A model generated the notes under the pieces. It was not told the origin of the DNA, did not search any database, and saw only the letters and a list, made by a program, of their open reading frames with translations. From Hyphochytrium catenoides (lineage: Eukaryota > Protista > Hyphochytriomycota), in contig FLMG01000366.1 of the NCBI GenBank assembly GCA_900088475.1, forward strand, positions 1 through 49,696: 49,696 nucleotides of DNA, given 5' to 3'. How positions within the stretch are numbered: the stretch's first letter is position 1; each line of letters begins with the position of its first letter. Shown piece after piece: positions 2,004 through 41,200 of the stretch. A program made the translations under genes and the position numbers.

Positions 2004-2152
2004 ATGTTTAGGTCACGTCTAAGATACTTGACTGCTATTAGCATTCTCATCTCATTGTCAAATCAAGTACAAGCTCAGAACGAACATGTTTAGGTCACGT
2101 TTCAGATAATTGACTGCTATTAGCATTGTCATCTCAAGTGTAGCTCCGAACG
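2004..2152. repeat. Imperfect tandem duplication (82-bp period) overlapping the stop and 3' UTR of the AIFM2-like gene
   Basis: atgtttaggtcacgt..agata.ttgactgctattagcatt.tcatctca begins at both 2004 and 2086. Confidence 0.85.
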
Positions 2153-3328
2153 GGTCGCTGAGGCGAGCAGGTCCTTCCCTTTGAATCCCTTAACTAACAT
2201 TGTCCCTAGCTTTCCTTTATAAGAACCGCCAATCTCTACAACTCCATCCGAAGGACCTAGTAACATGAAAGCCATGGACTGTGCTGGTGGTTTGTAACTC
2301 TTGCTAGGCTTAGTCCCAGTTGCGAGAGCTATGATATTTGCTGCCGCAATCTTGCCGTGCTCTTTGGCGCTAACTGCTAGCTTGGTCTCGGGTATATCAG
2401 TCACATCTCCGACAGCAAAAACGCAACCACCAGTTGATGAAATCTCAGAGACTTGCAGATGTCCGTTAACTTTGATCTGCTTTCCATCATTGAGCCATTG
2501 GAGAGGAAACGGTGATAGAGCACCTTTGTGAGTGGTCCCATTGCCAGTAGCGAAGAAAACAAGGTCTGCAGATAGCATAGTACCGGAAGAGGTCGTGACG
2601 GATTTATCTGCAGGGAGTACCACACCCTTTCCATCAATATCCGTCGGGGTGACGACGGACTGATTAAGAAGAACCTTGATGTTCTTAGCACGAAGTTTTG
2701 TAAGCACTGCGTCTGTGGTCTCCTTGGACAGATGAGGTGTGTAGTTTTTGAGCAGAGTATCTGCGGAACAAACGACCGTGATTTCCTTGTCTAGATAAAC
2801 ATAGCGTAGTTCTGTGGCGACCTCCAGCCCAACTGGTCCCCCTCCGACAACTACAACGTTCTTTGATGCTTTAATGGTCTCGAACAAACCCCGAATCCTC
2901 TGCGACATCGCCTCGATTGAAGTTACATCGTCAGGAACGCGAGTAGGAAACACCGTCGGTCGACTTGCGCCAGTCGCCACGACTAGGTAATCATAATCTA
3001 CAAACGTAGCTTCTCCGCCATCCTGTGTAATTAGCTCCACTCGTTTGCCCTGCACGTCGATATGCTTGACTTTGCCTACTACCAATCGGCTAGTTGGACG
3101 TTTTAGCAGTTTGTCCAGTGGAAAAGCGACGTTTGCAATCCATCCAGTCACAGCCGGTAGTCTTACACTCCCAATAGAATGGTAAAAGAAACCCTTCGGG
3201 TCAATAAGAGTGATATCAAACCCGGCTGCCTCCAATGCCCTCGTGGCGGAAACACCTCCATAGCCAGCTCCAATAACCACAACTTGTCGGTTCTGCACAG
3301 AAGCAGGAAGGATAGGCTTGTTCCCCAT
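2129..3328 (-). CDS. AIFM2/FSP1/AMID-like FAD-dependent NAD(P)H oxidoreductase (Pyr_redox_2), intronless, 399 aa
   Basis: FAD motif VVVIGAGYGG, YDYLVVATGA, NAD(P)H motif VVVVGGGPVGLE, and VFAVGD. First ATG (3328) gives MGNKP, a possible N-myristoylation site as in FSP1. Confidence 0.9.
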   Translation of the reverse strand: MGNKPILPASVQNRQVVVIGAGYGGVSATRALEAAGFDITLIDPKGFFYHSIGSVRLPAVTGWIANVAFPLDKLLKRPTSRLVVGKVKHIDVQGKRVELITQDGGEATFVDYDYLVVATGASRPTVFPTRVPDDVTSIEAMSQRIRGLFETIKASKNVVVVGGGPVGLEVATELRYVYLDKEITVVCSADTLLKNYTPHLSKETTDAVLTKLRAKNIKVLLNQSVVTPTDIDGKGVVLPADKSVTTSSGTMLSADLVFFATGNGTTHKGALSPFPLQWLNDGKQIKVNGHLQVSEISSTGGCVFAVGDVTDIPETKLAVSAKEHGKIAAANIIALATGTKPSKSYKPPAQSMAFMLLGPSDGVVEIGGSYKGKLGTMLVKGFKGKDLLASATRSELHLR

Positions 3329-4846
3329 CGTCAAAGGATCTTAAAATACTGACGAACTCGGCCAAAACAAAGAGAGGAGCGCTGTTGTCTCCGTGGTGCT
3401 GGTTACGGGGCAAGTCCAATAATGGAAAATAGAAGGCAGCCTAGCCTAAGCTTATCGGCCAATTAGAAGGCCCAAGATAGGCACATACCCCATAGCGCTC
3501 ACTCGTTCACTCGTCAATCGGTCTCATTGGCTTTGAATTTTGCCCTTAGAAACATGTGTCACGATTGAGGGTGGGCTACACCCGCTCCAACAAAGCCTCC
3601 AGATCAGTTGTTTTGACCAAATGTGAGCTTTATAAGCGGTTACCAAAGATGCCCATGACGAAGAGAGACGTTGGGCCTGCTAAGGTCAGCTCGAGAAGAG
3701 TTAGGAGTACAAGTACAGTCTTTATGCAGGTATGGCTTTGCCGGAAGCATTCCGACAGAGCATATCTGGCTTCGTTTCAAATGGACTTCCATGGACTTCG
3801 GCAAAGTATTATACAATTGCATTTCCCCGCTTATTACGAACTGGCGGTTACGCATACCCCAACACATCATTCTTCAACATCATTAATCATTGATGGGAGC
3901 TTCACAGCAAGCTACAGGGTGTTACACAAAATGGAAGTACACTGTAGACCATGATGATGCTATTGTAGTACAGCTGGACCTGAATAATGTCAGATTGCGA
4001 CAGCCTACTTGGCTATCACAGGCTGTTTATTTATGATAATAAAAGGACAGACAGATCTTGCTTTGCATGAATGGAACTTCGGTGGACTTCCGAAACCACT
4101 TGTACTTCTATTTATAAAAGCACGGCAGTTATGCTTAATATTTATTTTTGTTCGATAAAGCTAATCACTAAGGCCTTAGGAGAATGAGAAAGACAGGAGA
4201 TGGAAAGGAAACTTTTAGTTTCTTCTCCCACTACTGTGTCCCTGAAAATACGCAGAAAGAAGAGAAAACACCTTTTGTCACTTGTAACAGCTAAGGACTA
4301 TTGCCCCAAACAAGATGTCCATCTCCATGGAAACTGGTGCTCAACAATGAGAAGTTGGGACTCTAGGAAACACCTTATTGAACCGCATAGCGGAGGGCTT
4401 TCGAAGAGGTGCTAGGCGGATTGTTATCTTTCTCGGTTGCAGAACCCCCCCCTACGTCGGTAGGAACTGTGTGTGTACCCTTTACGTGAAACACGCTAAA
4501 GTGAAGTTCCTTAACTGTGAGCAATATACTTGCAGGACAAAACAAAATTATAAAAAGTGGTCCTTCCTCTGTCATACTTAATCTAGGAAAAGGCCATTAC
4601 AGCCTTAGGTATCTAGTTGTGAACCATGATCACCAGAGTTGTATTCTCATACCCTTTTTATCTCCTCTTCTTGTTCTCCCTCTCACATGATGCGAAGAAC
4701 GTTAGGGAACACGTCGTAGCTTCCTCGACAGCTAGCTCTCAGTCAGTGATCATTCTGCAAGCGCCTGAAGAAATGAAAAGTAGAAAAAAGCTAAATACTA
4801 ATCGGCCAAAATCTGCAGTCTCTCTTTCTCTCGCCCTAATAGTCAG

Positions 4847-5701
4847 ATGACGTCTGCATCTCCGTCTCTTCCCGGTCGCCTTTCCGGCACTAGTGAAAAT
4901 GTCGAAGTCATGCCCACCGTATTCATCCCTCACGGAGGAGGCCCAATGCCGATTCTCGGCGACAAAGGGCACCACCAATTAGTGAAGTTCCTGAGGGGTT
5001 TCACTGACAAACATCTGTCCAGGTACTCCCATGGTATTCCCAAAGCAATCTTGCTCATCTCAGCTCACTGGGAGGAGAGACAGCCAACCATTCAGGCCAA
5101 CCCTCAGCCCCCTCTCATCTATGATTACTATGGCTTTCCAAAGCAAGCCTACACCTTAGAGTACCCTGCTAAAGGTGATCCCCGCTTGGTCGAAAGAGTG
5201 GCAGAGCTATTGAAGCTAGCAAATATTCCGTGCAAACAGAATATCGAGAGAGGCTATGACCATGGGGTCTTTATACCACTAAAGCTGATGTTCCCAAAGG
5301 CGGTTATCCCGGTGGTACAGCTCTCTCTTCTCTCATCCCTCTCTCCTGTAGAGCATCTACGGCTTGGCCGAGCGCTGTCACCTTTGCGTAACGAAGGGGT
5401 GCTGATTGTTGGCTCTGGAATGTCATTCCACGGCGACTTTTTCCAGCCGTCATCCAAGACTCAAAGCATCAACTTCCATACATATCTACGACATGCGGTT
5501 CTAGAAACGGCACAAGGAAAAGAAAGGACAAAGCTTCTGATAGATTGGGAAGCAGGGCCAGACGCCCGTGCTTCACATCCCAGAGAGGAGCACCTTTTGC
5601 CACTCCTCACAGTTATAGGAGCAGCGGAAAATGGAAAGGCAGAAGAAGTATTCTATGACGAAGTCATGGGCATCATGGTGGCAGCCTATCTTTTCCATTG
5701 A
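4847..5701 (+). CDS. Extradiol ring-cleavage dioxygenase, LigB / 4,5-DOPA dioxygenase (YgiD/DODA) family, intronless
   Basis: Motifs FIPHGGGP, ISAHWE, YDYYGFP, RGYDHGVFIPL, PVVQLSL, GSGMSFH, HPREEHLLPL. Start is 4847 or the next ATG (MPTVF). Confidence 0.92.
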   Translation: MTSASPSLPGRLSGTSENVEVMPTVFIPHGGGPMPILGDKGHHQLVKFLRGFTDKHLSRYSHGIPKAILLISAHWEERQPTIQANPQPPLIYDYYGFPKQAYTLEYPAKGDPRLVERVAELLKLANIPCKQNIERGYDHGVFIPLKLMFPKAVIPVVQLSLLSSLSPVEHLRLGRALSPLRNEGVLIVGSGMSFHGDFFQPSSKTQSINFHTYLRHAVLETAQGKERTKLLIDWEAGPDARASHPREEHLLPLLTVIGAAENGKAEEVFYDEVMGIMVAAYLFH

Positions 5702-7138: not shown

Positions 7139-8386
7139 ATGGGGTCAGCAACCAAGGACACAACGTCAGACGGTGTGGTGATCAGCCTGTGCCAACCCCT
7201 TATTGGCTACCTCCAGAGGCGGCCACCAGTCGGAGACTCTGCTAAGAGATGGCTGATTCATGCACGAGCAGAGATTGATAGCATGCTGCAATACAATGCC
7301 CAGGCAACGATAGCAGAGGACACTTCTGGAGGTGGTGGCCAGCAGACTCTCAGTGACATGCTTGGTCCTCCCCTTGGCAACAGTAGTAACCTGAGCCCTA
7401 GAAGCAGCAACAAGAAGAAGGCTGTAACTCCGGACTCTGCTACGGGGCCACTCACCACAGTCATAGCGAAAGCCAAGTCTACTAGAAGAAAGAAGAAACG
7501 CGCTCTTGTTGCTGTCTCTCCTTACACAGAGATGACCCCGACGGAGAGCAGCCTCACAGCGATGGAGAGAATGTTTGGAAAGCAGTTTCACCATTGGTAT
7601 TGGGCAAGGCGGAGGCTTTTCAACCCCTTGAACCTCTTGGCAACAGTAGTCATCCAAGTAGCCATGATAGCCTTCCTGCTAGCGGAAGACGAGTATATCA
7701 AGCTCGTCACGATGACAACCTACGTGCTTGCTTGCTTTTTCACTCTCTTTCACCAGACATCGATCTACAACTACTTCTTGGTGAAGAGGTGTTTAACGTC
7801 ATTTGAGGCTATCTTCCTGAGCTTGGAGCTCTTCCTCTTTGGCGTGGGGTTATGGGGCGTCCTCTGCTTCAAATCGAGTATACTTGTTATGGCGATCGCT
7901 TGCTGCCTTACCTGCTGGTCGCTGGCTTGCTTTGACGCCTTTCCTGTGAGCGTTAGGCGGGCTACTCCATACCTCTACTGCTGTTGCTGTCTATCCTACC
8001 TCTGTATCCTCACGGTATTCTACTCTCGGGCGCCAAAGGGTCTCTGTCTGTACAAAGTCGACCTTCGTCATGGCGTTGTAGAACAGGATGATCCGAGCGT
8101 CAGAGTTAGTCGACCATGGACTTTCGCCCTCTTGGACTTTGTACTCAACCGTGGATGCACGGTGCTGATGCTGACTGTCAAACTGACCTACTCTGCCTTC
8201 AGGCATCCCCAAGATTGCGTGATTGTGAAAAGTCGCTTAAAGCTCATCGAGATGCTTATACCGGTGGGGACAAACCAGACCAGGGCTTCATCAGTACCAT
8301 CAGGTGCCGAAGAAGCTACCAATCTCAGCAGCACGACGAGCCAGGATAGGCCCAGCAGCAAAGTCAGCCTGCGGGGAGAAGAATGA
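7139..8386 (+). CDS. Uncharacterised multi-pass membrane protein (~6 TM helices) with a disordered basic N-terminus, intronless
   Basis: 415-aa ATG-initiated ORF. Six hydrophobic segments lie between FNPLNLLATVV and LMLTVKLTYSAF; several are Cys-rich (YCCCCL). Confidence 0.75.
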   Translation: MGSATKDTTSDGVVISLCQPLIGYLQRRPPVGDSAKRWLIHARAEIDSMLQYNAQATIAEDTSGGGGQQTLSDMLGPPLGNSSNLSPRSSNKKKAVTPDSATGPLTTVIAKAKSTRRKKKRALVAVSPYTEMTPTESSLTAMERMFGKQFHHWYWARRRLFNPLNLLATVVIQVAMIAFLLAEDEYIKLVTMTTYVLACFFTLFHQTSIYNYFLVKRCLTSFEAIFLSLELFLFGVGLWGVLCFKSSILVMAIACCLTCWSLACFDAFPVSVRRATPYLYCCCCLSYLCILTVFYSRAPKGLCLYKVDLRHGVVEQDDPSVRVSRPWTFALLDFVLNRGCTVLMLTVKLTYSAFRHPQDCVIVKSRLKLIEMLIPVGTNQTRASSVPSGAEEATNLSSTTSQDRPSSKVSLRGEE

Positions 8387-10295: not shown

Positions 10296-13200
10296 CTAAG
10301 CAGTCTGGACTCCCCTTCGGGATCTGTTGTTTAAGGAGCTGACAGCAAGCCGTCCTGACGGTGGTGCATGTTTCTCATTATTTGTCCCTGTGAATTGAGC
10401 CGAAGAAGAGCCAATGAGTCCAGCAAAGGCGACAAAAAACAGTCAGAGATTAGGCAAAACCCTCTCTCTATATATATCTATGACCCACACCCACGTGCGA
10501 CAGCACTCTGCTCTTACGTGAAGTAGGAGCAGTCGTCTCTTCTTGATCTCTCGTTTTTCTGGTGGCGGCGGTGAGACCCGTCAGGCCTCGGAAGAGTCTT
10601 CCGACTCTGTTTGCTGCTTTGTTGTCATCCTGCTGACCCCTAGCGACGACAGTGAGCGGGTTACTCTCCCTAACGCCAGGGCTTCGTCATGGATGCCGGG
10701 GGACACTTACATTCCATCGCTCTCCTGCTGTCTTATTTCAGACGTTCTGGGCCTTGGCCCCTGTTCCTTTGCGAGCGGGCCTGGAGAGGATAAGAGCCGT
10801 CCCGTCCTGGGTCGACCACTGCGACCGTTCTCTACGGAGCGTCTGACTCCATCTTCTGTGTCCGGACCACGCTGAGGTCCGCCCTTCTTGTTGGTGGCAG
10901 AGGCGGCGGCGATGGACGCGGCTGAATAAGAAGGTAAGAAGTGATGCATAAGGATCGGCACCGAGAAAGGAGAGAGAGAGAGGGGCGAGCTGGTGAAGAC
11001 CTTACCTAAGCTACTGTTAGGCAGCAAGGGCGGCAAGAGCCTAGCAGCTGCACCGTCTTTCCTGGATCCTTTACCGCGCTCCTGTCGCCTTTCACTACGA
11101 AGAGGGGAAGAAGCGAAAAGAAAAAAAACAAAGTCACGTGAGTTGGCTGGCAGTCTAGAATGCTCTTTTTTCATGATCTCTCTTCCCTCTCTCTCTCTCT
11201 CTCTTCATATTCGCTCATTTATCTTTGCCTTTCCCGCCCCCTGACCAGCAGCATGTGACTGTTCTCACCTCGTGACTCCTCTCTCCGTCGCTGCTGCCTT
11301 CTTCGGCATCGCGTCTTTAGCGCGTCTTTGAGTTGCCGCTACTTCGACCTTTGACGGTGTTGTCCTTTGATTAGTGAGAATCGCTGGAGCCGGAGAAAAG
11401 CTGGCGCTTCCGGTTGTCTGCATGTCCTCCTCCGTGCTGTTTGCTAAGTAGAGACAAGAAAGACGACAACAGGAGTAGTGAGTTTGATGTGAAGCTTTCA
11501 TTACAAGCGGACAAGTGAGAGAGTAGCAGCAAACCCAACCAACCGCAAGAGAGATAAACGAGAGAGAGGTGGAAGCACCATGAGAGGTAGCAGAAAGGAC
11601 GTCCTGACCATTTAACAATGACACAGAACCAGAAGTGCCTGACTTCCTTCTTAACAGGCCCGTGGATTGCCACAGCCTCCTCGCCCGGTCCGTCTGTGCC
11701 TCCGATCGTAACCTTTCCGAACAGAGAGAGATATTCTTAGCAGCGCAGATGACGAAACATCACGCATCTGTCCTCTCCATTGTCTCGCAACGTTTCTCTT
11801 CCTTCCCTCCTCTCGCTTAGCCAGCTCTCTTGCCCTCTTTTGCTCTTCTTTCTGCTACTCTTTCTTCCCTCACTTGGGGGCTCTCCTTTCTCTATTTAGC
11901 CTCCACCCGTTTCCCTCTTTCTCAGAAGAGGCAAGTCAGACACTCACCCCACGCGTTCTGTCCGCTCATCATCCTGCTTCACAGGCTCTTCAGAAGAGGA
12001 GGTAGCGACCCGTTCGTGCCTCCCAAGCTCATCTGCTTCTTGTCCCTCGGTTGCGCTAACCGTAGAAGGAGCACCTGGAAGCCAAAGGAAGAAGGGAAGA
12101 AGCAAAATTGGTTGATGAGACAAGGGGAAGAGAGATGCTTAGGTTATTAGCATCTGAAGCGTCTCACCTTGGGAGATGGAAGGGGCTCTGTGGTCTGATC
12201 TCTCGCTGGGCCTTCTGATGATGCAAACTCCAGTGGATAGCAGCAGCCTGCTGACCCGACGCCGGGCCACTTCATCCTCCTCGTCTTGTGCGGCCCTGGA
12301 GGGGGAGAAACAGCTNNAATCTATGCACTTACCGCTTGCCCCTGGCGCTAGAGATTCTGGCCTTGTGTTGATCATTGGGCTGAGCTGCAGACACCACGGT
12401 GGCAGGAGGAGTAGCGCGCTCCGCCGGTCGGCTAGGGTTTCCTTCCTTCCTTTTCTCCTCCTCCTCCTTGGCTGCTACACCTAGCCCTATTTCAAAAACA
12501 AGCAGCCAAGTTAGACAAGAGCATTAACAGTGGCTTCTGACGACAGAGACTGTCAACAGAGGGTAACACACACACACACAAACACACAGAGCATTATGGC
12601 GACAAGAGGGCTGAAGAACTGACCATGGGAGGATAAAGGCGGTGGGGCAGGCAAGGCAACTTCTGCCTTGCGCTGCAAGAGTCCACTAGATCGCCACAGC
12701 CTTCTCGCGCGGTCCTGAGACTCCTTCTTCTGTCCACTGCCGTGAACAGGAGGGAGGACGGTCAGCAGAAGACTTTACTGGCTAGCTTGGGTCTGGTCGG
12801 AGGAGTCTCTCTCCTTCTCTCTCTCTCTTCTGCTCCAGTGCGTTCTCTCACTCTCCTTGCGCTTCCGCCGTGACCCTCACTATGGTGGCCGTCAGTCCGC
12901 TTTGCCAACGTACCTAGTGCTTTTTGCCAGCTTTTGCTTCTCAGTCACTTCTGAGGACTGCACCGTTGCTGCTGTCGTTGGCAGAGCCTCTGCTGGCGCT
13001 CTCTTCGTGTTTATACGAGGAGGAGGAAGGACAGGGGAAAGGCGTCCAGAAGCAGGACGAGAAGCGGCCAACCCTCCCTTCTCGCTCTCCTCTTTGGGGA
13101 CAGAAGGAGAATGTCTTAGAGGCGACCGCGGAGAGAGAGAGAAAACCGCTATGTCAAGCGAAGAGATCATCAAGATAATGAGAGAAATGAGGAGGAGCGA

Positions 13201-16200
13201 CGGACATAATGGAAGAAAGGTGTAAAGGAGAGAAAAAAGAGGGACAAGCAAAAGGAGATAACTGAGTAAAGACTGACCTTGGGATGGAGAAGTGGAGGCG
13301 GAGGGAGTCCGAGCCTGGATCCTCTTGCTGCTGAGCCCGCTGGCTCCCCAAAGCCTCCTAGCACGGGTCTGGATCTGCTCCCGCTCCCTGCAATCTTTGC
13401 TTAGTAGTCCGCTCGCTTTTCTTTCTCTCTCTCTCTCTCTCTCTCTCACAAGTCACTTGGCCTGTAGGTGCTCGTCCTACCGTGCGTCGTCACTGTGAGC
13501 GTTCACTCGTGGAGGTTCTCCCTGGTTCTTCCCTTGGCTGTCCGCCATCCCTTCGATTTCAGGCTCCATAGCCTCCCTCCCGCGGCTGATAAGAGAATGA
13601 GGACAAGAAAATCGAAGGTATGGAGAGAGAGAGGTGGAAGGGAGAAGGAGTTAGAAAGGAAAAAAGATGACTAGACAGGTGACTTCGATACTCCGCCTGC
13701 ATATATTGCTGTGCGCCCATCATAGACACTCTCTTTCTCTCAAAGCTTCTCTCTCTTTCTTCTCCCTCTCTTCTCTCTATACGTTCTGCTTTCATTCTCT
13801 GTTTCTAGTCGTGACCAACCTGATGCGAGAGGGCTCACTCCTCGTCTGCACGACCAGTCCAGGTGTTCTAGCAGCGCTGCCTGGAAGATAGTGGTCTGCT
13901 GCAGACGTAGAGATGGTACATAAGGCAAAGTGACAGGGATGAGAGGAGAAAGGAAGGAAAGGGCCACAAACTTAGCAGCGACAAAGAAGAGAGAAGGAGG
14001 CTCCAACTGATAGAGAGAGGTCTTGAAACAGGGGAGTAAAGCAGAGAGGGAGAGAACGACAAGGCGGAACGAGGAGGCCAACAACAAGATACTTTGAAGA
14101 GAGAGAGAGAGAGAGAGAGAGAGACCACAGACCAGAAGCTAGGGAGAGGGAGAAGGGCAAGACGATTTGAATATTGAAGCTTATGTTCAGGAGCTACCTG
14201 CAGGAAGAACAGCCACCGACAGAAGAGAAACAACGGGAGAGTCTCTTTCTTCCTTTGGGCTGCTGACACTCTTCTCCTGTCCAGCTACTTCCGTGATGGA
14301 ACCAGCACTGTGGCAGCGGGAGGAAGCGACAGATGAGACAGAGAGAGACTATGATGCGACTGACATAGGAAGCTCAGGGAACGAAGGAAAGGGAAGGACT
14401 TTACTCCTGACTTCTGCTTGTTGTGCCCTCATTCATCTCTCTCTCTCTCTCTTCTTTCGAGTTCCTTCCTTCCTGACCTCATGTTCTTACCTAGGGGGCT
14501 CATCCTTGTGATTCTCCTCTTCTGCAGCGGAAAGGCAGAGGGTACTCCCCGTCACAGAACCAGAAAGAGAGAGAGAAAGAGGGACACACGCCGCTGCAAA
14601 GGAAAGAAAGAGAGAAAGAGCGAGAGCGAGAGCGAGAGAGAGAGAGAGAGAGAGTTAAGTCAAGCGAGAGCGCAGACGAAAGACTGGCAGGGAATAACAG
14701 GATACAAGGCCTGGGATCCGGAAAGAAGAGAGAGAGGAGAGAGAGATAACGCACCTGTTGGGAGCTCGGTCACTGGGGGCGCTCCGTCTACGTGTTGCTC
14801 GGTTTCGGTGGTGCTGGTCGTCCTTTTCTCCGCCTCATCCTGGCGCTTTCTTGCTACTTGAGCAAGAACTGAGTCCAGGAACTGGACAGCCACGATCATC
14901 CTGTGGGAGCTTTGTCAACAACAGGGACATCAACTTCTCGCACAGATGACTCTCTATGTCTCTCTCTCAATCTCTCTCTCTCTCTCTCTCTCTTACTCTA
15001 CGTTACCTGTTGTTGGCAGCTTCCTCCTCTGTTGGCCCGACCGAGGACACACTAGTAGCAGTCTCTTGTGGCTTTTCCTCTTCTTTGGAAGTCTCAACTG
15101 GGTAAGACGAAAGAGGACGTTGTGTGCGTTGAGAGAGAGAGAGACAGAGAAAGAGAGAGAGAAGGGTTGTTTGAAAGATCATCAAGGAAGACAGGACAGA
15201 GAGCACAGCGCCAAGGTCGCCGCTAGGAAGTAGAGAGGGAAATCGGCTGCCAGGCCCATCTCCAGTCAGTGAAAGAAAGACAGAAACTGAGGCGCAGAGG
15301 ATTACACAGAGAGAGAGCGACAGAAGGAGAGAGAGAGAGAGAGAGAGATGGTACCTGCAGCGAGCTGGAGCACTGCGTGATTTCCTTCTTCTTGTTGCTC
15401 GCCGGTGCTGCTATTCTCCTCGCTCCCCTTTCCTTCGAGCTGCAGCCGGGTTGTGACTTCCGCGATAAGAAAGTCCAGCATTTGAGTGGCCACACTCCTC
15501 ATCCTGCCATTGTTGTGAGAGCCCCTCGCTGTCAGTGACACCAGCAGCACCAGCGATAGCGCGCTTTGCTCTCTATTTCTCTCCTCACCCTCTCTGTCGC
15601 CTGGCAGACCTCCTTTCTCTCTTTTATTCTCTGGGAATAGTTATCTTTTTGCTCCTTTCTCTCTCGCTTTCATCGCCATGTTCTCTCTCCCTCTTTCTCC
15701 ATCTTTCTTCCTACCCGTCTTCCCCGGTATTGCTTTGCTTCTCTCTCTCCCTTACAGAGCCTGATTTACCTGACGACGTCTGCTTCTTCGTCCTCCGGCG
15801 CCTTTCCCTGAGGAAAAATAGCAGCGAGAAGAGCCTGATCTGCACTCCTCTTCGATGAGATCTGTTCCGCTTGGTCTGTGCCTTGTAAAGTGAGAGCGAG
15901 ACAGAGAGTGAAAGAGGAGAAAGAGAGAGAGTGTGAGAGCTTAGAAAATGTCACTAAGCGAAAAAGTGTATGTCCGTCACCTGGTTCTCCCTCCTCGATT
16001 TGAAGCAGAAGAGATGAGGCAGCAGAAAGAGACAGATGATCCTCTTCCTTCTCAGGGCCAGCAGCAACAGCTGACAGAGATGATGGAAGGGAAAGAGAGA
16101 TTGGAGCTGTCTCTCTCTCCATTTCCGGGTCATAAGGCTCAGACTTTGTCTCCTCCTCAGCCACAGCAGCCATAGATGGAGGAGGGAGAAGGACTTGCGC

Positions 16201-18057
16201 TCTTGGGACCTCGATCACCGGTGCGTGCGGCTCAAGTTTCTTGTCCAGAAGAGAAAAGAAGAGAAGGTTCCAGCGGGACAACGCCCTCTCACTTCTTTCT
16301 CTTTTCACAGCAGCCAAGGCAGCAACTCTGTCCTTGATTTCTACGAAGAGAGGAAGACGGGAGGCTCGAGCGAAAGAGAGAGATCTGATTCTATCATCCC
16401 TGACAGCCCAGGCAGTCATTAGATCCTTCCACAGAGGAAGGGACGCCACCCACAAGCGGAGAGTCTTTCTCTCCTTTCTCAGAGCCGCCATATGGGTAGC
16501 CAGTTGCTTCAGCTCTGCGGAGAGAGAGGGAGAGAGCCTTCCCTTTGCGAAACGGTTTGCCCTTGCTTGTCTTTCTGCTGCCAGTGAGATAAGCTCTTGG
16601 AACAAAGAGAGACGTTGACATTTCCTCTTGTTCCTTTGAGAGACCATCTTTGCAGCCGCTGCAGGGAGCAGATCTGCCAAAAGAGAGCGGAGAGTCTGTT
16701 GCACTCTTTCTCTCTCCTCCGTTGTGGAAGATCGTTCCTGGTACGCTCTGCGGAGGTCTGCGGAGAGAGAGGAAGAGAGCCTTCCCTTAGCAAAAAGGTC
16801 TGCTCTTGCTTGTCTTTCTGTTGCCAGTGAGATAAGCTCCTGGAACAAAGAGAGACGTTGACATTTCCTTTTGTTCCTTTGAGAGACCATCTTTGCAGCC
16901 GCTGCAGGGAGCAGATCTGCCAAAAGAGAGCGGAGAGTCCGTTGCAATGTTTCTTTCTCCTCCCTTTGAGTGGATCGTTCATGGTATGCTCTGCGGAGAT
17001 CTGTCAANNNNNNNNNNNNNNNNNNNNNNNNNNNNNNNNNNNNNNNNNNNNNNNNNNNNNNNNNNNNNNNNNNNNNNNNNNNNNNNNNNNNNNNNNNNNN
17101 NNNNNNNNNNNNNNNNNNNNNNNNNNNNNNNNNNNNNNNNNNNNNNNNNNNNNNNNNNNNNNNNNNNNNNNNNNNNNNNNNNNNNNNNNNNNNNNNNNNN
17201 NNNNNNNNNNNNNNNNNNNNNNNNNNNNNNNNNNNNNNNNNNNNNNNNNNNNNNNNNNNNNNNNNNNNNNNNNNNNNNNNNNNNNNNNNNNNNNNNNNNN
17301 NNNNCGCTCTGCGGAGGTCTGTCAAGAGAAAACAGAGTCTTTGCCTAGTTTCTTCCTCACGCAGTCTGCGGGCAGCCCTTTCTCTTGCTACTGACATTAG
17401 ATCTTGAAAGAGAGAGAGTGTGCTCGGTTGGGAAAGGAGTCTTGCTCTCTCTTCTCTCCTGGCAATCCTAGCACTAGCTTCACGGACAACCTCTTCCAGG
17501 ACCGTCAGAGGGAGAATAAAGAGAGAGAGAACTTGCCTTCTGGCAGCTCTCTCGGCAGCAAGTGCCACCAATTCGTTGAACAAAGACACGGGCCTTGAAA
17601 GCGAGAGACGCCTTGCTCTTTCCTCTCTCCTCAGAAAGCTGTCCCTACCTGCCTGCAGAAGTTCCCTATGGAGACAGGAAGGAAATCTGACGGAGGAAAG
17701 AAGGAACAACGCTCTCTCTTCCCATCTTTCAGCCCTCCGAGCGGCAGCCTCGGCGAGTTCCAGAGAGAGACACGGTGGGAGCCGAGAGAGTGCCGAGAGA
17801 GGGATGACGTAGGTCGCTCTCCTATTCGCCCTCTCAGCCGCTGCGAGAAGGAGCTCGTCCTTGAGGGAGAGCGGCAGCCATTGTTGAAAGGTTCCTCCTC
17901 TTTGTTTGGTCTCCCGGTGCCGGTATGTCACTACCGCAAGAGTAGTGACACAAAGCGCTAGTGGAGGATAGAGCGGGGAAGATGCGATAAGGATCGCAGG
18001 GAAGACTGACTGGCAGACCGCCAGCGCTGCCTCCCGAAGGGACAGACCTCCCCTCAT
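10296..18057 (-). CDS. Large orphan 21-exon gene: N-terminal hydrophobic anchor, helical repeat array and tandem exon-pair modules (~1,530 codons including the N gap)
   Basis: Hand-spliced exons, all GT-AG and frame-consistent: 18057-15981, 15881-15770, 15503-15355, 15097-15007, 14900-14755, 14521-14491, 14307-14198, 13898-13820, 13585-13481, 13387-13278, 13148-12914, 12736-12624, 12486-12333, 12295-12168, 12074-11948, 11712-11609, 11443-11269, 11094-11006, 10921-10711, 10669-10518, 10387-10296 (TAG). Repeated peptide motifs fall in the predicted frames. The last exon and the exon 6 acceptor are least certain. Confidence 0.72.
16500..17330 (-). repeat. 243-bp (81-aa) near-identical coding tandem repeat next to a 297-N gap
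   Basis: ccagtgagataagctc..ggaacaaagagagacgttgacatttcc occurs at 16581 and 16824. Both gap flanks (Ns 17008-17304) carry gctctgcggag.tctgtcaa, consistent with collapsed extra copies. Confidence 0.9.
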
Positions 18058-19499
18058 AATATCCCTTGCTGCCTCCTAAGAGGCCAATAAGAGAGACCAA
18101 AGAAGAGATGAAGAGATGGGGAGAGATCAAGAGAGTAAAAGCGTAAAAGAGTAAAAGACCACGGCTAGAAAGACAATAAAGACGTTTAGGCCTAAAGGTT
18201 CAGAGCTTGGGAAAGCTGATCGCTATCGTCCTCCCCTACAACTCGAGCTGTAGAAGAGGGACTGCTGATCTTTGAGGAGGTCAAACTCCACGGAGACGGA
18301 AACGCGCTTCCATCCGCGGAGAGTGCGCTCTTTAGAAAGGTCGAAAGACGGCGGAGCTTTGCCAAGGGTCGCCATATCTAAGGGAAGAGCAAAGGAAAGA
18401 CACAGAGAGAGAGATAGAGAGAGTGTGAGAGCGGGAAGAAAGATACAGAGGAGGCAAGATGAGTAAGAGAGATAAGGTGACAGGGAGCGAAACAGAGAAC
18501 AGAGAGAGAGAGAGGGGAAAGGAAGAGAACGAGAGAGAAGAAGAAAAGAGCCTGGGAGAAAGAGTAAGCAAGAGAGAGAGAGAGATATGAAGAGGCTAGA
18601 GAGCGAGACGAACGCCACTGACTGTCATGAAAGATTCCCTCTGTTATCTTTCCAGATAATCGCTTCCTCGTGACCGCTCTGTCTAGTCTTAGCCTGAATG
18701 TTTCCGCTCTGCTCTTCGTTGCAACTCTCTGTGAGGGCAATCCGCCGCCTGCCGTTGGCTCCAGGGATGGATCTTTCTTTTATCTCTCCTCGCCAAGTTT
18801 GAACTTGCTACCTGATCTCGCATGGGCTCTGACTTTTGTCTTTTATAGGCTAACACCCTTCATCTTGGTCTTTCTCTCTTTGCTCTTTCTTTTTGAGTCT
18901 TGGCCCNNNNNNNNNNNNNNNNNNNNNNNNNNNNNNNNNNNNNNNNNNNNNNNNNNNNNNNNNNNNNNNNTCTCGTGGGGTATCTGTCTTCCTGGCTCTT
19001 GTGTTTCTGTCTCGGTTGTATCTCTTCTTTATGGTCTCCACCTCAGTATTTGAATTCTACTCTGTCTGGACGGCCGGTCTATCTCGTGCTACCTATCAAC
19101 CTATCTCTTCTCTCAGTCTGTCTCTCTTCCTCCTACATCAATGTCCCAAGGGTATCAGAGGTGCTGTATTCCTAACATAAATACAGCATCTCCTGCCCCT
19201 TCCTCCCCTCCCTTCCTGTCTCTCTCCTCTTGCCAGTAACCGCCCGCATAAGATCCCCACCTTATCGCCTAAATTCCCCTAAATATATGTAGGCAGTTTT
19301 AGAACCAACAACGCATTGCTCAACCTCACTCCTGGGGGAGGTCAGAAATCTCCAGCTGATACTTGTACGAAAACAAGGCGAGACTCTTTCCAACCACTTC
19401 TAGTTTACAAATTCGGTTCGTTGTGCGCAGCTTGGCAAGTGAGATACTATTTGACCGATATTAGCGCCGGTGCCGAAGATAGCTCTCTCTCCTCTGTAC

Positions 19500-23383: not shown

Positions 23384-24119
23384 GAGACAGATGGAAGAGA
23401 GAGGCAAGGATAGAGAGACAGAGAAGGAAGAGACAAAGACAGACTTAGCGAGCAGAAGGAAAAACCATGAAGTTGAGTAAAAGGAGCGAGACAGATCTCA
23501 GGTTAGATGAGGATCCAAGAGCCAGAATAGACAAAGAGGGGAAAAGAAGGGCAAGAGACACCACTGAGCACAATACAAAGCGAGACAACAAACTGAGGAC
23601 GANNNNNNNNNNNNNNNNNNNNNNNNNNNNNNNNNNNNNNNNNNNNNNNNNNNNNNNNNNNNNNNNNNNNNNNNNNNNNNNNNNNNNNNNNNNNNNNNNN
23701 NNNNNNNNGAGAATGAGAGAGAGCGAAAAGAGAGGGAGAGGAGAAAGAGGGAGAGGCAAAGAGGGGAAAGAGGGAAACAGTCATTGAGATGTAGCAGCCA
23801 GGGGAGCCAGGAGCTTGGTTGATGTGGAACTCACTGGAAGGAGGAAAGGACCTTAGGAGGTCTATCAGCTATCACTCCTCTTGCTCTCACGGCTCACGGG
23901 TCAGTCGTGTTCTTGCAGTTGGGAAGCGCGACACACCAGTCCGCTCCGCTCCGCATCTTTACTCTTCTCTGCCACAGCCAGAGACGGCTTCAGTCTCTGT
24001 TCCCTCCCTTCTTCCATCAGTCCGGTGACGGCGCTTTAGTAGCGTTTGCCTCTCCCGTGGAAGTCCGTCTTGGATATAATTAGTCTTCTCCGTGCCAGTA
24101 GAGGCTTCATCAGGATACA

Positions 24120-32176: not shown

Positions 32177-35100
32177 GCTTGCTCGTTCCTCGATCTGCCA
32201 GCAAGAGAAAGGTCTCTACCTTCCTACCACGGCTGATTCTCCTTCTTTCGTACAGAAGGAGGACACCCTAGTCCTCTTGCAGTCACCGGCCGTGTCACTG
32301 CGGTCTCCTCATCGTCCGATAAAGGTCTCCGTCTATAGATTATAGATGCTTGCGGCGGCCTGGTCGCCTGACTGATGATGACGGGACGATGACAGTGAAG
32401 AAGAAGCTGCAGGGCACTCCTGCGCCAGAGTTGAAGATCGGCCGTGTCGCCTGAGACGCCTGTGCGTGGATGTAGTTGGTAGCAGTTTGTCAGGATCTGT
32501 GTAAGCTCAAGAGTCATAATAACCTCAAAAGGCACGTATAACGCTGTCTAGTCGGCCGTTAGCGGCTGTTGTGGGAGTTTGCTTGATTCGACACTTTGCA
32601 GGTACATCACAATGAGGAATAAAGGACAGTGGTTTTCCTTTCTTCTTCTGTGCTGCTGGATCATCATCATGATATCTTCTGGAAGCGTGTGGCGGTCTTG
32701 CTGTTGGTGGTGCTTGTTCTTCTTCCGCCTTTCATTATCAACGCTACCTAGGGAAACTGACCCTGAATCTTCTATGTTTGATGATGATAGGCGGAGGAGG
32801 AGGAGGACGGCAGCCTTGCTGGAGTGAACGAAGACTTTCTGGTTGCTGCTTGTCTTCTTCTCTCTCCTTCAGGTTTTCATTATTTTTTCAACAAGTTGGT
32901 CTTTCGTTTCTTTCCTTTTTCTTATCTTATAACAGCAGTAGCGGTCAGAAGTAACTCAATAACAGAGATAGTAGAGGTAAAGAGAAGAAGGAGATGCTTC
33001 ATTACACTTAGCAATTGTTGTCGTGATCTCGGTGCCTCATCGATGTTATCTCGGTGCCTCATCATCTGGCTTTGTATGTATGTGCTCTTCTGCAGCCGCT
33101 GAAGCAGTGGTCGGCTTGATTACCGCTGGTAGAGAAGCAAGTGATAGGTCAATCGTCTTCTATCCCTGTCCTTATACAGCGGCGGAAGGAATGGTGGCTT
33201 GATTGTTGCTGGCGGAGAAGGAAATGGCAACAGGTCACAGTAGTCGTCGGATGTTGTGAAGGCTCAAACATATTGACGGCAACAATAAAATAAATTAACG
33301 ATTTGACGAATATCGTCAACAACGAAGAGAGGTCAGTGGCAAACACATCAGCAGAGAGAAAAGTAGAACATCATCTCAAATAGGTTGGACGTATGGTAGT
33401 AAAAAAATTTATAAAGCCATGGGGTTCATACTAGGATGGCTGCTTGGAGAATTGAAGCAAGATTCTCCTCATCCTCATTCAGCGGCAACAGTCCATGACT
33501 TGTGACATCAACAAGGAACTTTCTTTTTCCAAGGAGGACTTCCTCGTCGAGGGCATAAGAAGGAAAATGAGATAGAAGAGTGACCAAAGGTATTTCTGGT
33601 GCTGAGAGGGGTTGGCGCTGTTGCCTGTCCATGTGTCCGCAGCACACATCCGTAGATTTACGTTCTTCAAAGGAGAAGTCTTGAACTCTGTACTCTGTAC
33701 CCTTGTTGTCTAAAACAGTACTAGTAGAGCTTATTTCCTCAGGCTGATTGATGGTGAAGGAAGTCAATCAATCCTTGTCTCGGGTGAGCGGCGCTGAGAG
33801 ACCCCAGCTGTTCCACAAAGGCGCTGCTCTTGGCATGCAGCCCCAGGCCCCAGCCATCCTGCGCTGATAAGGCGCTGTTCAGCGAGAAAGATCTAGATTG
33901 TCCTACTTTCCATCTCTTCTAGAGAAGTGCTACAAGTAGAGGAACTATTACGGGAGTACTACTACTAGTTGTACTACTGGGTGTAGAGCAGCCTACTAGC
34001 TCCTACGAGTACTGTACCATACAGTTGAATAGCAGCCTAGCTCCTGCCACCAACCTGCCACCTGCCATGCTTATTATTACTCCGGAGTACATGCTTACTA
34101 CTTGTACACCATTAGTGCTCCTCCACCTATAGCTCTCGTAGATCACCTCATACATACTCTGCTAGTTCTACCACCTATACCTGTAGGTACCAGTAGTTCC
34201 ATTGATGTGGGGCTAGTTACAGGGACATGGCATGCTTCTTCCCTCCCTTCACGGCACAAGTAGTCAGCTACGTATTATTGTTGCTCCATGGGCATACTTC
34301 TGTCTGTACTATGGCTACTATGGGATACGGCTTATAAAGGCAGGGACTTCTGGGTCCAAAGCTCACAGCTAATAAGAGAAGACCTTTGGAGAAGACTGTA
34401 AACAATGTCAGTGGCTGGGAAATTGCGACTGGGCCAAAAGATGCCTTGTGGTTTCTATCTTTCTTGTTATATGTTTTTATACTTTGGCACCACTAGGAAT
34501 ATAAGGGGGAAAGAAGCAGGATACCTGGTAGAAATGGTAGAATGACTATCTTAGCCTCCCACCCAATTNNNNNNNNNNNNNNNNNNNNNNNNNNNNNNNN
34601 NNNNNNNNNNNNNNNNNNNNNNNNNNNNNNNNNNNNNTACCCACACCCTCCCTCCCTGCACCGTCAGAGCCAAAACACTGTCTCCCAATGTCCTCTAAAC
34701 TCCTACCCTGCGTCCTCTTTAGTGCTGCGTCCTAGAATTACACCGAAAACTATGAGGGTAGGGGGCCGTTTAAAACGCCGCGTTTTAGGGGTTGATTGAT
34801 GTTAGAATCAGGTAGACAGATACGTCTTGCCGTAGGGGCATATTGATAGAACACAGTGGCTGTGGTATAAACCTTCTTGAAGGCCTTTTAATCCCCTTTT
34901 TTGGGCGGAAGGGGAGGCTTTCCTTTCTGATTTGTAACGTTTCTTTCCGTCTTTTTCCCACAGCTCCCCGTGCCCTTCTGTCTCCTCTCTCTTTCCACTT
35001 TCCTCTCCTGACATCATGACCACGATGCATCAGCCAACTCCCCAGCATCTTTCTTCATGGTCAGTCCAGAGCCAGGAGCTCTGCCTGATGTCTGGGCATT

Positions 35101-35330
35101 GAAGTCTTGAGACCCACCACACTACTACTGTGCCACTTGCTACTGTACCAGACCCATCGTTTCTTGAAATAGAGACCGCAGCGTCCACCGTGTCGGACCA
35201 TTACTATCAAATCTTCTCTGGCACGGTGCTACGAGACGTAGCCGCCCGTATTATTGACGCGCCGCTCTCTTCTGCCGTTGCCTTGGGGGAAGAAGCTACC
35301 CTCTGTCTCAGACAACTCTACACTGGACAG

Positions 35331-36677
35331 ATGGTGCAGCTCAAACACAGCGTGCAAGCCGCGTCACCCGCGCTTGAGGTCGAAGATGAGGAGCTTTTCA
35401 GATATCGTGACACAGAGGCCTTCGTTCGAGACTGCGATCTTTCTCCTGTCCCTACCGAAAGACTGAAGAAAGTTTCCCTTGTGGAGTGCAAACTCTCACC
35501 CATGCCTGAACGAATGTCGGAGGCAAGCATAGCAGATGACCACGAAGTCTCCCCCATGCCAGAAAGGTTCACATACGGGGCGCTCCGTACCCCTATCACC
35601 GCCAGTGACATGGACGACCATGGCCCTATCAGGACGGCAGAGAGGAGCTCTGTTAGGCGAAAGTGGGTGGGAATCGTAGGCCTCGTAGCCGTAGTTGGAG
35701 CGGTCGCCACCGTTGGAGCAATCTATCTCCAGTCAGATGAAGAAGAATCATCGGTACCGGTTGCGCAGTCGCTCTTGAAGCTAGATTCAAACGGTGAAGC
35801 GGCAGGCGATGCCAGTCGCTGGTGTGTGGTGTGGGATTATGCCGAGGATAACAAGGCAGAGTGGTTCGACGGTCACAACAAACCAGTCACAGTTGATAGC
35901 CCCAAAGGCGATGAAGCACTTTTCACTCTCACTCCAGAGAGCGGGAACGGATTGCCTGACGTCCATATCAAGAAGCCTTTTAGCGGCCGCAAAGCCTTCT
36001 TTATCGAAGCAGATTGGGGAACATCCACGTCGATGGGTAGTGTTTGGCTCCTGCACGAATCAACAACCAATTGCCCCAATGGCATTTGCACACAGTTTGG
36101 AAAGAACGCATGGCCTTCAACCGGAGAAATCGATATCTTCCAAACTCTAGAAAGCTACCCAGACACCCCCAATTGGCAGGATCATGTCTACTCCTGGAGC
36201 GCCCAGCAATGCTCCGTATCCTTACAATCTTTTCCTTGGCATCGTTTTGGGGTCCCACGCTCGCGGGGCCTGCGATATCTCGTTATTGTAGACCAGCTAG
36301 AGAAAGGTGGCCAGTATTGGCAAATAGTCCTTGACCCTAAAGTGGAAGGCAGCAGCACATGCTTTGACATCAAGCAAGCGCGCGGATGGTCTGATTTCAG
36401 TAGTGCAGCTTCTAACCTTGAGTGGCCCAACAGCAAGTACATCGTCATGAACAATGGCACGTTGCACTGGGGCTCAAACAAAGAGGGTGATTGCTGGAGG
36501 AAGGCACCGGTAGCCCCAGATTATGACAAACTCAACCTCGGGCTATTGGACGAACAACCTTGTGGCTATCCGTTTTTTGGAGGCTTCAACTGGCACTTGA
36601 AGGCTACGCAGGGTTCTCTCAAGGTGAAGACAATGAAAGTCTTCCAGCCTGTGACCGGAAAGGACCAGTGCTTTTAG
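35331..36677 (+). CDS. Type II membrane protein with a C-terminal GH16-like (beta-glucanase/transglycosylase-type) domain; acid/base Glu replaced by Gln; intronless
   Basis: RRK followed by the TM helix WVGIVGLVAVVGAVATVGAIYL. GSVWLL...WPSTGEIDIFQ matches the GH16 WPxxGEIDIxE motif. First ATG is 35331, although the frame is open from 35130. Confidence 0.7.
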   Translation: MVQLKHSVQAASPALEVEDEELFRYRDTEAFVRDCDLSPVPTERLKKVSLVECKLSPMPERMSEASIADDHEVSPMPERFTYGALRTPITASDMDDHGPIRTAERSSVRRKWVGIVGLVAVVGAVATVGAIYLQSDEEESSVPVAQSLLKLDSNGEAAGDASRWCVVWDYAEDNKAEWFDGHNKPVTVDSPKGDEALFTLTPESGNGLPDVHIKKPFSGRKAFFIEADWGTSTSMGSVWLLHESTTNCPNGICTQFGKNAWPSTGEIDIFQTLESYPDTPNWQDHVYSWSAQQCSVSLQSFPWHRFGVPRSRGLRYLVIVDQLEKGGQYWQIVLDPKVEGSSTCFDIKQARGWSDFSSAASNLEWPNSKYIVMNNGTLHWGSNKEGDCWRKAPVAPDYDKLNLGLLDEQPCGYPFFGGFNWHLKATQGSLKVKTMKVFQPVTGKDQCF

Positions 36678-38269: not shown

Positions 38270-41200
38270 ATGCAGTCGTCTCTTCTCCCTTTGGACCGCC
38301 TACAGCCGTGTGATATCCCGGCGTTGTTCGCTTCGGATGCAGACGACTGGGAGGGCAGGTATGCAGACCTTATTGAACAGGTGTTGCACTATAGGTACGT
38401 CAGTCCACCCGAGCGCGATATGAAAGTTATTCATGTTTCACAAGCTATGTGCCGCCCCGCTGCAGATCCATACAGGGCCCAGATCATCCGAGTCCTGCCT
38501 GTTCGCTACCACTGTCGCTGTGGCTGGAGTGGATTCTATCCATTAAACTCTTGTCCCAGACAGAAGTTCAGCTCGCTATTAGGACTAGTGCTTGTGAGTG
38601 GCGTATCATGCTGCATGTACTGCTTTCGCCTTTTGACTGTGTTGCCATTCCAGCTCCTCGGATGTTTCTTGAAAGCGTTGTAGCCTCACTTCCCAAGCGC
38701 ATGTGCGGGTACTGCTTCAAGCCTGGAGACATTGCATGGAACTGTCGCACATGCCAAGCGGATGACACATGCGTCTTCTGCAATGAATGCTTCCGTAACT
38801 CTAACCACGAAGGACACGAGGTCTACTTCTATCATACACAAAGCGGCGGCTGTTGCGATTGCGGCGACCCTGAGGCTTGGCGGTATGAAGGCTTTTGCAA
38901 CAGACACCGCGGGGCTTTCGATGCAGATCCTCTGGCCTGCATCCCGCCCGGACTTTTAAGCTGTTCTACCCTCCTCCTTGCTAAACTCGAACGGTTCTTG
39001 ATAGATGCTGTGCAGCAATGCGTTGAGGGCTTTGATCTGTCGGAATCTCGTCTGATCCAAGATGGTTCGAGCTCTCGCTTTTGCCTTTTGCTGCACAACG
39101 ATGATGTACACACGATAGACGAGGTATGCGGAGCTCTGGCTAGGATAGGTTGCCACTCCGACGAAGCAATCACTAAGGCCACGGTAGCTCATGAGGAGGG
39201 CCAAGTCATTCTACAATATTTTTCTGATTACTCCCTAGGCAGACCCGCTGCTTCAGTGCTGAGGGAGCACGACCTGCTTGTTTCTTTGATCTCTGAGAGG
39301 ACCTTGAGAAGAGTGGAGATAGCCGTGGAGGCCATTACGTGGGCAACAGACATTGCCTATCTGGCCGATGGGTTCACGCGCGTTTCCTACCTAGAGCTCC
39401 TGAAGCTTCGGCCAACTTCCAACTTCCAGCCTTGGTCGCCATGCGAGAGAACGGAGTCAGCAGCCATTATCCGCTACCTAATATTAGGTCACAGCAGAAT
39501 TCCCAAGCAGCTCATGACTGCTCTACACGGTTTCTACATGGCACTCTTGGCTGACCCCAAATTCAAGGAGGCGTTTGCGACTGCTTTCACTGAAGCTTAC
39601 CGCTCAGTTTATTCGGATTATGGTAAGGACGTGAAGTAGAAGGAGTAGAAATTGGGAGAGGGGAGAGATGAGAAGTAAAGTACATCGCGGGCCAAGCGCT
39701 GCGAAAGCGGATGAAGATGGCGAGAACCTTGAAGAGGGAAGGGTCGGTATAGGCCATGCGGAGGACTGATTTTGATCAAATGGGGTTGGAACAACAATTG
39801 TCGTCTATGTAAGTCGCTCTGACACCGCCTTTTCTTACTCTTCGTGATCAGTGCGCGGAATCGGGACATTAGCGGAGACCATCATAGGTTTTGGTGTCCA
39901 ATTTCTCAATCGAGGGAGCTTTGTCTCGTATCTGATTGAACGGCACCAGCTATTTGAAGTGCTGCTCAGCTCTCTTACCATGGCATTGGCACAGGCCTGG
40001 CAAGGGCCTCAGGAGAGAGCGGAGACGGGAAGAGCACCGCACCCACAGCAGGTAGGAAGGAAGGTAGCATAGAAGCGCTTTGGGTACAAACTGTGGCCTC
40101 TCCCATCTGGTGGCTGGGCTGGACATACTCTTTCTTTCCGTTCTTCACTTCTTCCGTCGAGGGAGTTTAGCCCTCGGCACTTTGGCTTAGTGCTTTCTCT
40201 TTGGTCTCATACCTCTTTTGTCATCCTACATCGTAATAGCAACAACTGACCGATGCTGTAAGAGAAATGGAAGTAGCTGTTGGAGGTAACAGAGGGCTCC
40301 AAACTGACTTGGTTGAGGCACTGCGACAGGTGCGGAGTTAGGGAGTACTCTATGGTTATACTGCTCACATTGTCTTATTTGTTTTGTCTTATTTGTCCGA
40401 CTTGGTTCACGATTTTGCCTTCGCTGGTCAGATCACCTCACATATACTCTGTTAGCTTTTCGATCATGACATGGCATTGTTGTTCACTCTCCGCGCATGG
40501 TGCCGTCTTGTCCCCTTACAAGGCTTCTGGCTCTCAGTATCTAATGCAGCTAGGTAACGTGCAAGATGAAGTGCAGAGGGAGAGAGCTGCTGAAGGTGTG
40601 CTCTCAACCATTAGAGCGCACGCCCATCCAGATCAGGTACCACACCTCGTGTCGGTCTTCAACCAGGTTGTGGAGGCCTTTTTCTCTTCCCTTCGAAGCG
40701 ACGAAGCGAACAATGCTCACGGTACAGCCAGAGTAAGTAGTGCTCGCTCGGATTCCTCAGTGGACAGGAGCAGCACCACTTAGGACTATTGTCCTTTTGA
40801 CCCTTTCTTGGCTTTGACTGTACTTTCGTCAGATAGGCTTCATATCTGCTGGCTGGGTAGAGATGGGCGAAGTCTTCCAATTTTTTTGGTGATCTATTTC
40901 CTCTGTTCGCAGCCGTGCTGAACGACCTGATTGTTAAGGATAAAGCTATGGAGGAACACTTTGAAAGGACTCTTTACTAATCAGCTCACATTCTCTTTCA
41001 GGCAGCAGATGGACGCGGAAGAAGGTTGGATGGAGCAGACAGCGCACAGAGAAATATGGGTAGAAGACGAGGCGTTTTCAACCTGGACCATGCTGTCCTT
41101 ACTCAGCGGCGGTATCAGAACTGCATTATTGATCTTAAGTACACGCTGCAGATAGCAGGCATGCCATCCAAGTTTGTTTCAGGAGTGAGGAACAGGGGCC

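Follow-up and report, generated by a model that had tools for sequence, protein, structure and literature searches.

The closest analogue in gene architecture of the locus described here, a predicted gene on the minus strand of contig FLMG01000366.1 from Hyphochytrium catenoides (GenBank assembly GCA_900088475.1), is the two-exon kringle unit of human LPA. The predicted gene runs from position 18057 to position 10296 of the stretch analysed, which is 49,696 nucleotides long and is referred to as the window. In LPA, which encodes apolipoprotein(a), the kringle IV type 2 (KIV-2) unit is made up of two exons of 160 and 182 bp (PMC6314250). The likeness lies in a tandem unit of two exons with lengths of 1 and 2 modulo 3, which makes the unit frame-neutral and means that the intron phases must alternate, and it would extend to growth by whole exon-intron units through unequal crossing-over. 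A frame-neutral multi-exon unit with repeating phases, as in LPA, was found at this locus, and units demonstrably paralogous in sequence were found for exons 10–20 only. LPA has near-identical units that encode a folded kringle domain and whose copy number is variable within the species, whereas those found here are old and would encode a short linear peptide and a disordered linker in a protein without relatives.

Genes of the tropoelastin (ELN) type also alternate short peptide exons with spacer exons, use a regular phase and have exons that can be dropped in frame. In elastin, single exons are frame-neutral and alternative splicing is documented, whereas at this locus only exon pairs, not single exons, are frame-neutral. 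Duplication of a two-exon unit is an already known route of gene growth and not a new mechanism. If confirmed, the locus would add an unannotated orphan gene for a poorly sampled soil stramenopile and provide a clean non-animal example of growth by the copying of a two-exon unit, in which phases, exon types and intron composition all alternate.

The features of the sequence indicate that this is most likely a real orphan multi-exon gene. We favour a single lineage-specific protein-coding gene on the minus strand, extending from approximately 18057 to 10296 with 20–21 exons, the rear half of which would derive from a copied two-exon unit, and we place the probability of this at about 0.7. An earlier examination of the DNA without database searches (the sequence-only reading) had proposed a stop-free minus-strand chain of 21 exons joined only by GT-AG introns. 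When the chain was rebuilt from the sequence it was reproduced exactly, with 21 exons, 20 GT-AG introns and a single open frame that begins with the ATG at 18057, ends with the stop codon finishing at 10296 and contains no internal stop in 1,500 codons. The intron phases also proved to be as claimed, running 1,2,1,2,1,2,1,2,2,1,2 and so on to a final 1, with no phase-0 intron and with 13585–13481 as the sole symmetric (2-2) exon. The summed length of each pair consisting of a phase 2→1 exon and a phase 1→2 exon is divisible by 3 (240, 177, 189, 288, 267, 255, 279 and 300 nt for the pairs from exon 3 onward). A model read by hand from pyrimidine tracts, YAG acceptors and GTRAG donors, with the phases ignored, recovered the same exons 4–21. 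In that model, a join of the strong acceptor at 15528 to the donor at 15770 was rejected, as it breaks the frame.

By itself, a stop-free GT-AG chain could be due to chance; the splice signals could not. For introns 1–19, each intron allowed from 5 to 322 donor-acceptor solutions that keep the frame. With the remaining GT or AG sites of the region as the background, a G at donor position −1 was found in 18 of the 20 introns (background 0.19, P=1e-11) and a G at position +5 in 15 of the 20 (P=5e-6), while A at −2, R at +3 and A at +4 were also enriched. A pyrimidine preceded the acceptor at position −3 in 16 of the 20 introns (P=1e-5), and the pyrimidine content 5′ of the acceptors was 0.73 versus 0.36 in the background (P=3e-11). 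When donors were scored by leave-one-out, 16 of the 20 in the model reached at least 6 bits, compared with 6 of 252 other GT sites on the minus strand and 11 of 260 on the plus strand. The model donor belongs to the top-ranked solution for every intron assessed (1–19) except intron 1. In-frame alternatives exist for eight of the acceptors; the donors withstand alternatives and the phases are therefore robust. Codon usage, scored against four open reading frames (ORFs) of the same window that are backed by Pfam, was highest in the model frame for 16 of the 21 exons. The splice model trained on this gene also selected a frame-consistent intron (39623–39851) in the Pfam-supported UBR gene elsewhere in the window.

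Further evidence comes from a peptide, (T/D)RARRLWxSxGL(L), that recurs in the phase 2→1 exons. It is found in exon 10 (13278–13387, 110 nt; TRARRLWGASGL at 13336–13365), exon 12 (12624–12736, 113 nt; DRARRLWRSSGLLQRK at 12682–12711) and exon 16 (11609–11712, 104 nt; DRARRLWQSTGLLRRK at 11658–11687), with degenerate copies in exon 14 (12168–12295, 128 nt; RRRVSRLLLSTG) and exon 20 (10518–10639, 122 nt; the variant NRVGRLFRGLTGL at 10576–10608). In exon 18 (11006–11094, 89 nt), which is also 2→1, the motif is lost or very degenerate. A six-frame translation of the window confined the motif to these exons and this frame. The products of exons 12 and 16 match each other by BLASTP with E=5e-9, and the motif exons 10, 12, 14, 16 and 20 are paralogous. 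At the DNA level, alignment survives only in a 39-nt motif core (family D8, to which exon 14 belongs) and in the 3′ ends of exons with their donors (family D16), and the motif core, of about 40 nt, aligns at 64–79% identity between units. For the closest pairs of motifs, the proportion of synonymous differences (pS) was 0.65–0.69, which is saturated, versus 0.28–0.38 for non-synonymous differences (pN). The Arg, Ala and Leu residues of RARRL are spelled with differing codons in the different copies, and this synonymous turnover with the amino acids kept is the mark of selection that acts on the peptide through this reading frame. As a conserved five-fold repeat, DRARRLWxSxGLL could be a new docking motif of short length and is a concrete candidate for testing.

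The phase 1→2 exons that alternate with the motif exons encode linkers sharing weaker common words (G..SRPA.GRL and AT.V.S). These are exon 11 (12914–13091, 178 nt; words SRPASGRL and ATV), exon 13 (12333–12486, 154 nt; KEEEEKRKEGNPSRPA), exon 15 (11948–12074, 127 nt), exon 17 (11269–11443, 175 nt) and exon 19 (10711–10921, 211 nt; RSGRPRTGRL). The recurring words noted in the sequence-only reading were borne out, with SRPA and GRL recurring in the linkers. Its attribution of the regular phases to duplication of a two-exon module was supported in silico by sequence homology for exons 10–20 (E=5e-9); in exons 3–9 no significant sequence similarity was found and only the phase and the intron composition repeat. 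Intron 13 is only 37 nt long and contains two unread bases (NN at 12316–12317), making its true length uncertain.

The front exons of the tail are exon 3 (15355–15524, 2→1; a start at 15503 is better and in frame), exon 4 (15007–15097, 91 nt, 1→2), which encodes an acidic linker (KEEEK), exon 5 (14755–14900, 146 nt, 2→1), exon 6 (14491–14521, 31 nt, 1→2), exon 7 (14198–14307, 110 nt, 2→1), exon 8 (13820–13898, 79 nt, 1→2) and the 2→2 exon 9 (13481–13585, 105 nt). Exon 7 ranks first among the frame-keeping solutions; for exons 5 and 6, in-frame acceptor alternatives at 14909 and 14593, respectively, outscore those in the model. The weakest acceptor in the chain is that of exon 10 (−3.7 bits by leave-one-out). 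The last coding exon, exon 21 (10296–10387), contains the stop codon ending at 10296 and has a weak codon score.

The composition of the introns was found to alternate in step with their phase, which is a new observation for this locus. Phase-2 introns begin GA-rich, phase-1 introns are CT-rich, and the purine content of the 5′ half ranges from 0.49 to 0.85 in the former versus 0.18 to 0.62 in the latter (Mann-Whitney P=3e-4). The intron sequences of different units no longer align. The simplest reading is that copying involved whole exon-intron units, which retained their composition.

On the reading favoured here, the rear half is built from a repeated genomic unit that consists, in order, of a motif exon (2→1), a CT-rich intron, a linker exon (1→2) and an intron with a GA-rich start. 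This unit would have been copied in tandem several times long ago; alignment between the copies is now limited to the motif core and the ends of the exons. The microsatellite-like GA/CT introns may have supplied the short homologies for unequal crossing-over. From copying of such a unit, the alternating phases and the lack of phase-0 introns follow automatically. The encoded protein would begin with a hydrophobic N-terminal segment, possibly tethering it to a membrane, followed by about 550 residues of long helices that include a recent 81-residue tandem duplication, then an acidic hinge and a tail of about 800 residues. The tail, rich in Ser, Pro, Ala, Glu and Arg, would probably be disordered, with D-R-A-R-R-L-W-x-S-x-G-L-L-x-R-K recurring five times at distances of about 90–200 residues. 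Such a protein, read as a helical stalk whose tail presents the docking peptide five times, could act as a multivalent scaffold: every repeat of the peptide would dock the same partner, one copy per repeat, the partner being either a protein or an acidic membrane surface.

The part of the gene upstream of the modules is dominated by exon 1 (15981–18057), which starts at the first ATG, seven codons past an in-frame stop, and has a codon score of 0.27 in the model frame versus 0.01 and 0.08 in the other two. Its product is 17% Leu, 14% Ala, 13.5% Arg and 9% Glu and consists of units of 27–33 residues of the type LSLFxELxxLAAERAARR followed by an acidic tail. The N-terminus is hydrophobic at approximately residues 10–45 (best 19-residue Kyte-Doolittle mean 1.69). 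An AlphaFold2 single-sequence model of 342 residues of exon 1 contained long helices only, at low confidence, with a predicted local distance difference test (pLDDT) score of 53 and a predicted template modelling (pTM) score of 0.21. Exon 1 is followed by intron 1 (15882–15980, 99 nt, phase 1, CT-rich; donor 7.2 bits, acceptor 6.2 bits) and exon 2 (15770–15881, 112 nt, 1→2). Intron 1 is in frame and stop-free, so that its retention would leave the frame intact.

Exon 1 contains two copies of a 243-bp tandem repeat (81 codons; 16514–17003, minus strand) that are 91% identical (Tandem Repeats Finder (TRF) score 831) and abut an assembly gap of 297 N at 17008–17304. Both flanks of the gap read LTDLRRA, are identical at 19 of 21 nt and share TTGACAGA, which is absent from the second repeat copy. 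DNA contigs of the public runs X1 and X2 connect 16999 directly to 17318, omitting 318 nt, which is accounted for by the 297 N and the 21-nt duplicate. A contig of 821 nt from X3 covers 17734–17305 and then, after 42 nt, 16944–16757, a spacing that corresponds to the same join, although this contig is an approximately 88% identical copy and not the haplotype of the window. Assemblies built from short words can collapse tandem units. The gap is probably due to a spurious 21-nt overlap of contig ends. As 318 is 3 × 106, the frame holds across the gap, and any whole number of 243-nt units would likewise preserve it. With the spurious gap collapsed, the predicted protein has about 1,395 residues, and the part following exon 1 is rich in Ser, Ala, Arg, Glu, Thr, Pro and Gly.

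Searches agreed with the statement in the sequence-only reading that no family could be recognised. Pfam recognised no family in exon 1 or in ten single-exon peptides, phmmer found no match for 413 residues of exon 1 among 1.84 billion protein representatives, the PDB sequences contained no relative and two scans of metagenome contigs revealed no homologue. The top score in the ESM Atlas (0.64) was meaningless. A match of exon 1 to Nexin_C (PF08628) at 26.9 bits (cut-off 22.3) was rejected, as the score adds up two near-identical tandem copies, each of which on its own reaches only 15.9–17.0 bits at profile positions 60–100 of 110, under the cut-off. Neither a PX nor a PXA domain was found in the Pfam search of exon 1 and the single-exon peptides.

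The RARRLW peptide was also compared with binding sites for calmodulin and centrin. The calmodulin 1-8-14 criterion calls for a basic helix in which positions 1, 8 and 14 are occupied by bulky hydrophobic residues. The peptide resembles the site of smooth-muscle myosin light chain kinase (MLCK) in having a basic stretch, a Trp, small residues and a Gly (ARRxWQxTG, the MLCK wording being unconfirmed, versus ARRLWQSTG here). It differs in that the hydrophobic anchors are missing, with Q, R or S at position 8 and A, S or R at position 14. An MLCK-type calmodulin site was rejected on these grounds: Trp occupies position 1, while exons 12, 16 and 10 have Q/A, R/S and S/R, respectively, at positions 8 and 14. 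The conserved Gly of the peptide falls at position 5 of the putative 1-8-14 register, and a search of PDB chains with the motif peptide retrieved no calmodulin target. Centrin-binding repeats of the Sfi1 type were rejected because the spacing of the hydrophobic residues is wrong.

Several observations weigh against a single continuous gene, and most of them concern the join between exon 1 and the small exons. The long ORF ends at a genuine in-frame TAA (15768–15766), and the acceptor required for continuation is weak. That claimed for exon 3 in the sequence-only reading, at 15524 (gag/g), scores −7.9 bits, which is under the background mean; a better in-frame site lies at 15503 (gcag/g, 4.4 bits). 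The join of exons 2 and 3 depends on either a mediocre acceptor or a poor one. The locally strongest acceptor, at 15528 (listed at 3.1 bits), has phase 1, which is wrong for the donor at 15770, and matches only a donor at 15981, the use of which would make exon 2 intronic. A hidden Markov model (HMM) of eleven exon-1 units gave no significant match in the downstream exons, leaving only strand, adjacency and frame to tie exon 1 to the rest. These features, the in-frame Met codons within exon 3 and an intron 2 that is GA-rich throughout, with no clear CT-rich 3′ part, would also be expected of two genes on the same strand, the first (one or two exons) stopping at the TAA and the second (about 19 exons) starting at an ATG near 15500 in exon 3 and holding the duplicated exon pairs. 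We regard this as unlikely, though the least improbable of the alternatives considered. The TAA lies inside a consensus donor (CAG/GTAAAT, 7.5 bits), the frame-keeping solution 15769→15503 ranks first of 50, and the distance from the stop to the putative new start would be only about 245–265 nt, compared with 1.5 kb or more for the other intergenic distances in the window. The putative link between exon 1 and the exons downstream depends on a single uncertain intron.

The remaining points against the single gene concern its coding status and its expression. The codon score is not highest in the model frame for exons 8, 10, 16, 18 and 21, BLASTP detected no similarity between exons 3 and 5, and the searches made found no homologue by which the coding frame could be backed by conservation. 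Among the public sequencing runs listed as matching 13400–16900 there were no RNA runs, and a listing of runs of any kind for exon 1 contained only DNA or unclassified runs. The 24 exonic substitutions listed between strains or alleles comprise 8 synonymous and 16 replacement changes, which is barely better than neutral, in a small sample that includes only the changes listed and decides nothing. One variant contig of equal depth carries changes, among those listed in 15842–16149, that total −178 nt and would shift the frame. Taken with the many frame-keeping solutions available per intron, the missing RNA runs, the weak constraint and the apparently frame-shifted contig could indicate a decaying or unexpressed gene, or a chain that is partly over-fitted, in which some of the small exons are unreal and the frame results from free choice of GT and AG sites. 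This is the most improbable of the explanations weighed here, given that the enrichment of the splice consensus concerns features that played no part in building the chain, the motif is kept at the protein level despite synonymous turnover, and no stop interrupts the frame.

The sequence-only reading had also suggested that the skipping of frame-neutral exon pairs could generate many isoforms; different sets of pairs would be left out in different transcripts. Every exon pair has a total length divisible by 3, and the GA-rich and CT-rich introns alternate with phase and would be complementary as RNA, (GA)n with (UC)n, so that intron pairing might program the skipping. Both the frame-neutral pairs and the matching intron composition follow from duplication of whole units with no function needed, and the alternating phases, as an automatic result of unit copying, are not evidence of a skipping mechanism. 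Most of the exons have strong splice sites, which is typical of constitutive exons, and the runs listed for the locus included none of RNA. Isoforms arising by pair skipping are purely conjectural and improbable, more so than the two-gene arrangement. Still less probable, and only slightly ahead of a decayed or over-fitted chain, is the specific proposal that the strict alternation of the introns is functional, with the complementary (GA)n and (UC)n tracts of adjacent introns base-pairing in the pre-mRNA so as to loop out particular exons, singly or in pairs. If true, such pairing would constitute an RNA-duplex-guided splicing code, producing programmed isoforms, or exon circles, that vary in the number of RARRLW docking sites.

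For the single gene favoured here, the other variation in public DNA contigs was compatible with an open frame. No stop was created by any of the 24 exonic substitutions listed, and the indels listed against public contigs total a multiple of 3 in exon 1 (+5 and +1; −1 and +1) and at the start of exon 3 (−3), a tally that holds except for the one variant contig described above. Among the indels listed, those of −1, −2 and −3 gather in intron 10 (13092–13277). Compared with the X1 and X2 contigs, this intron contains ten substitutions and three indels within about 50 nt and is more densely altered than the flanking exons. Read depth over the module region equalled the single-copy baseline. A second version of exon 1, 87–88% identical, was present in public DNA runs at approximately equal depth (15842–16149, 17305–17744 and 17832–18126); it has in-frame deletions of 147 and 33 nt as well as small indels. 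This version, whose indels as listed add up to a frame shift, may represent either a paralogue or a divergent haplotype. One variant contig lacks 15843–15989 (147 nt), a segment that spans intron 1. A 151-nt contig from a 2025 soil metagenome (X4) is 97% identical to exon 1 at 16096–16246, indicating that the organism or a close relative occurs in soil.

The window has a G+C content of about 49% and contains further unread stretches at 18907–18970, 23603–23708 and 34569–34637, the first of which, a gap of 64 N, lies approximately 850 nt upstream of the start codon at 18057. Two ORFs on the plus strand, 7139–8386 (415 codons) and 35130–36677 (515 codons), belong to no Pfam family, and a search of 5.8 billion proteins found no homologue of the former. 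The two may be additional orphans or ORFs that are open by chance. A multi-exon gene for an N-recognin of the UBR1/PRT6 type is located at 38395–49145 on the plus strand, with zf-UBR and ClpS domains in the ORF at 38449–39639 and PRT6_C in the ORF at 47157–49145 (both identified by Pfam). The nearest Atlas cluster to this protein is commonest in Zoopagomycota. The genes for a Pyr_redox_2 flavoprotein oxidoreductase (2129–3334, minus strand) and a LigB-type extradiol dioxygenase (4847–5701, plus strand) are both apparently intron-free, in sharp contrast to the nearby gene with 20 introns.

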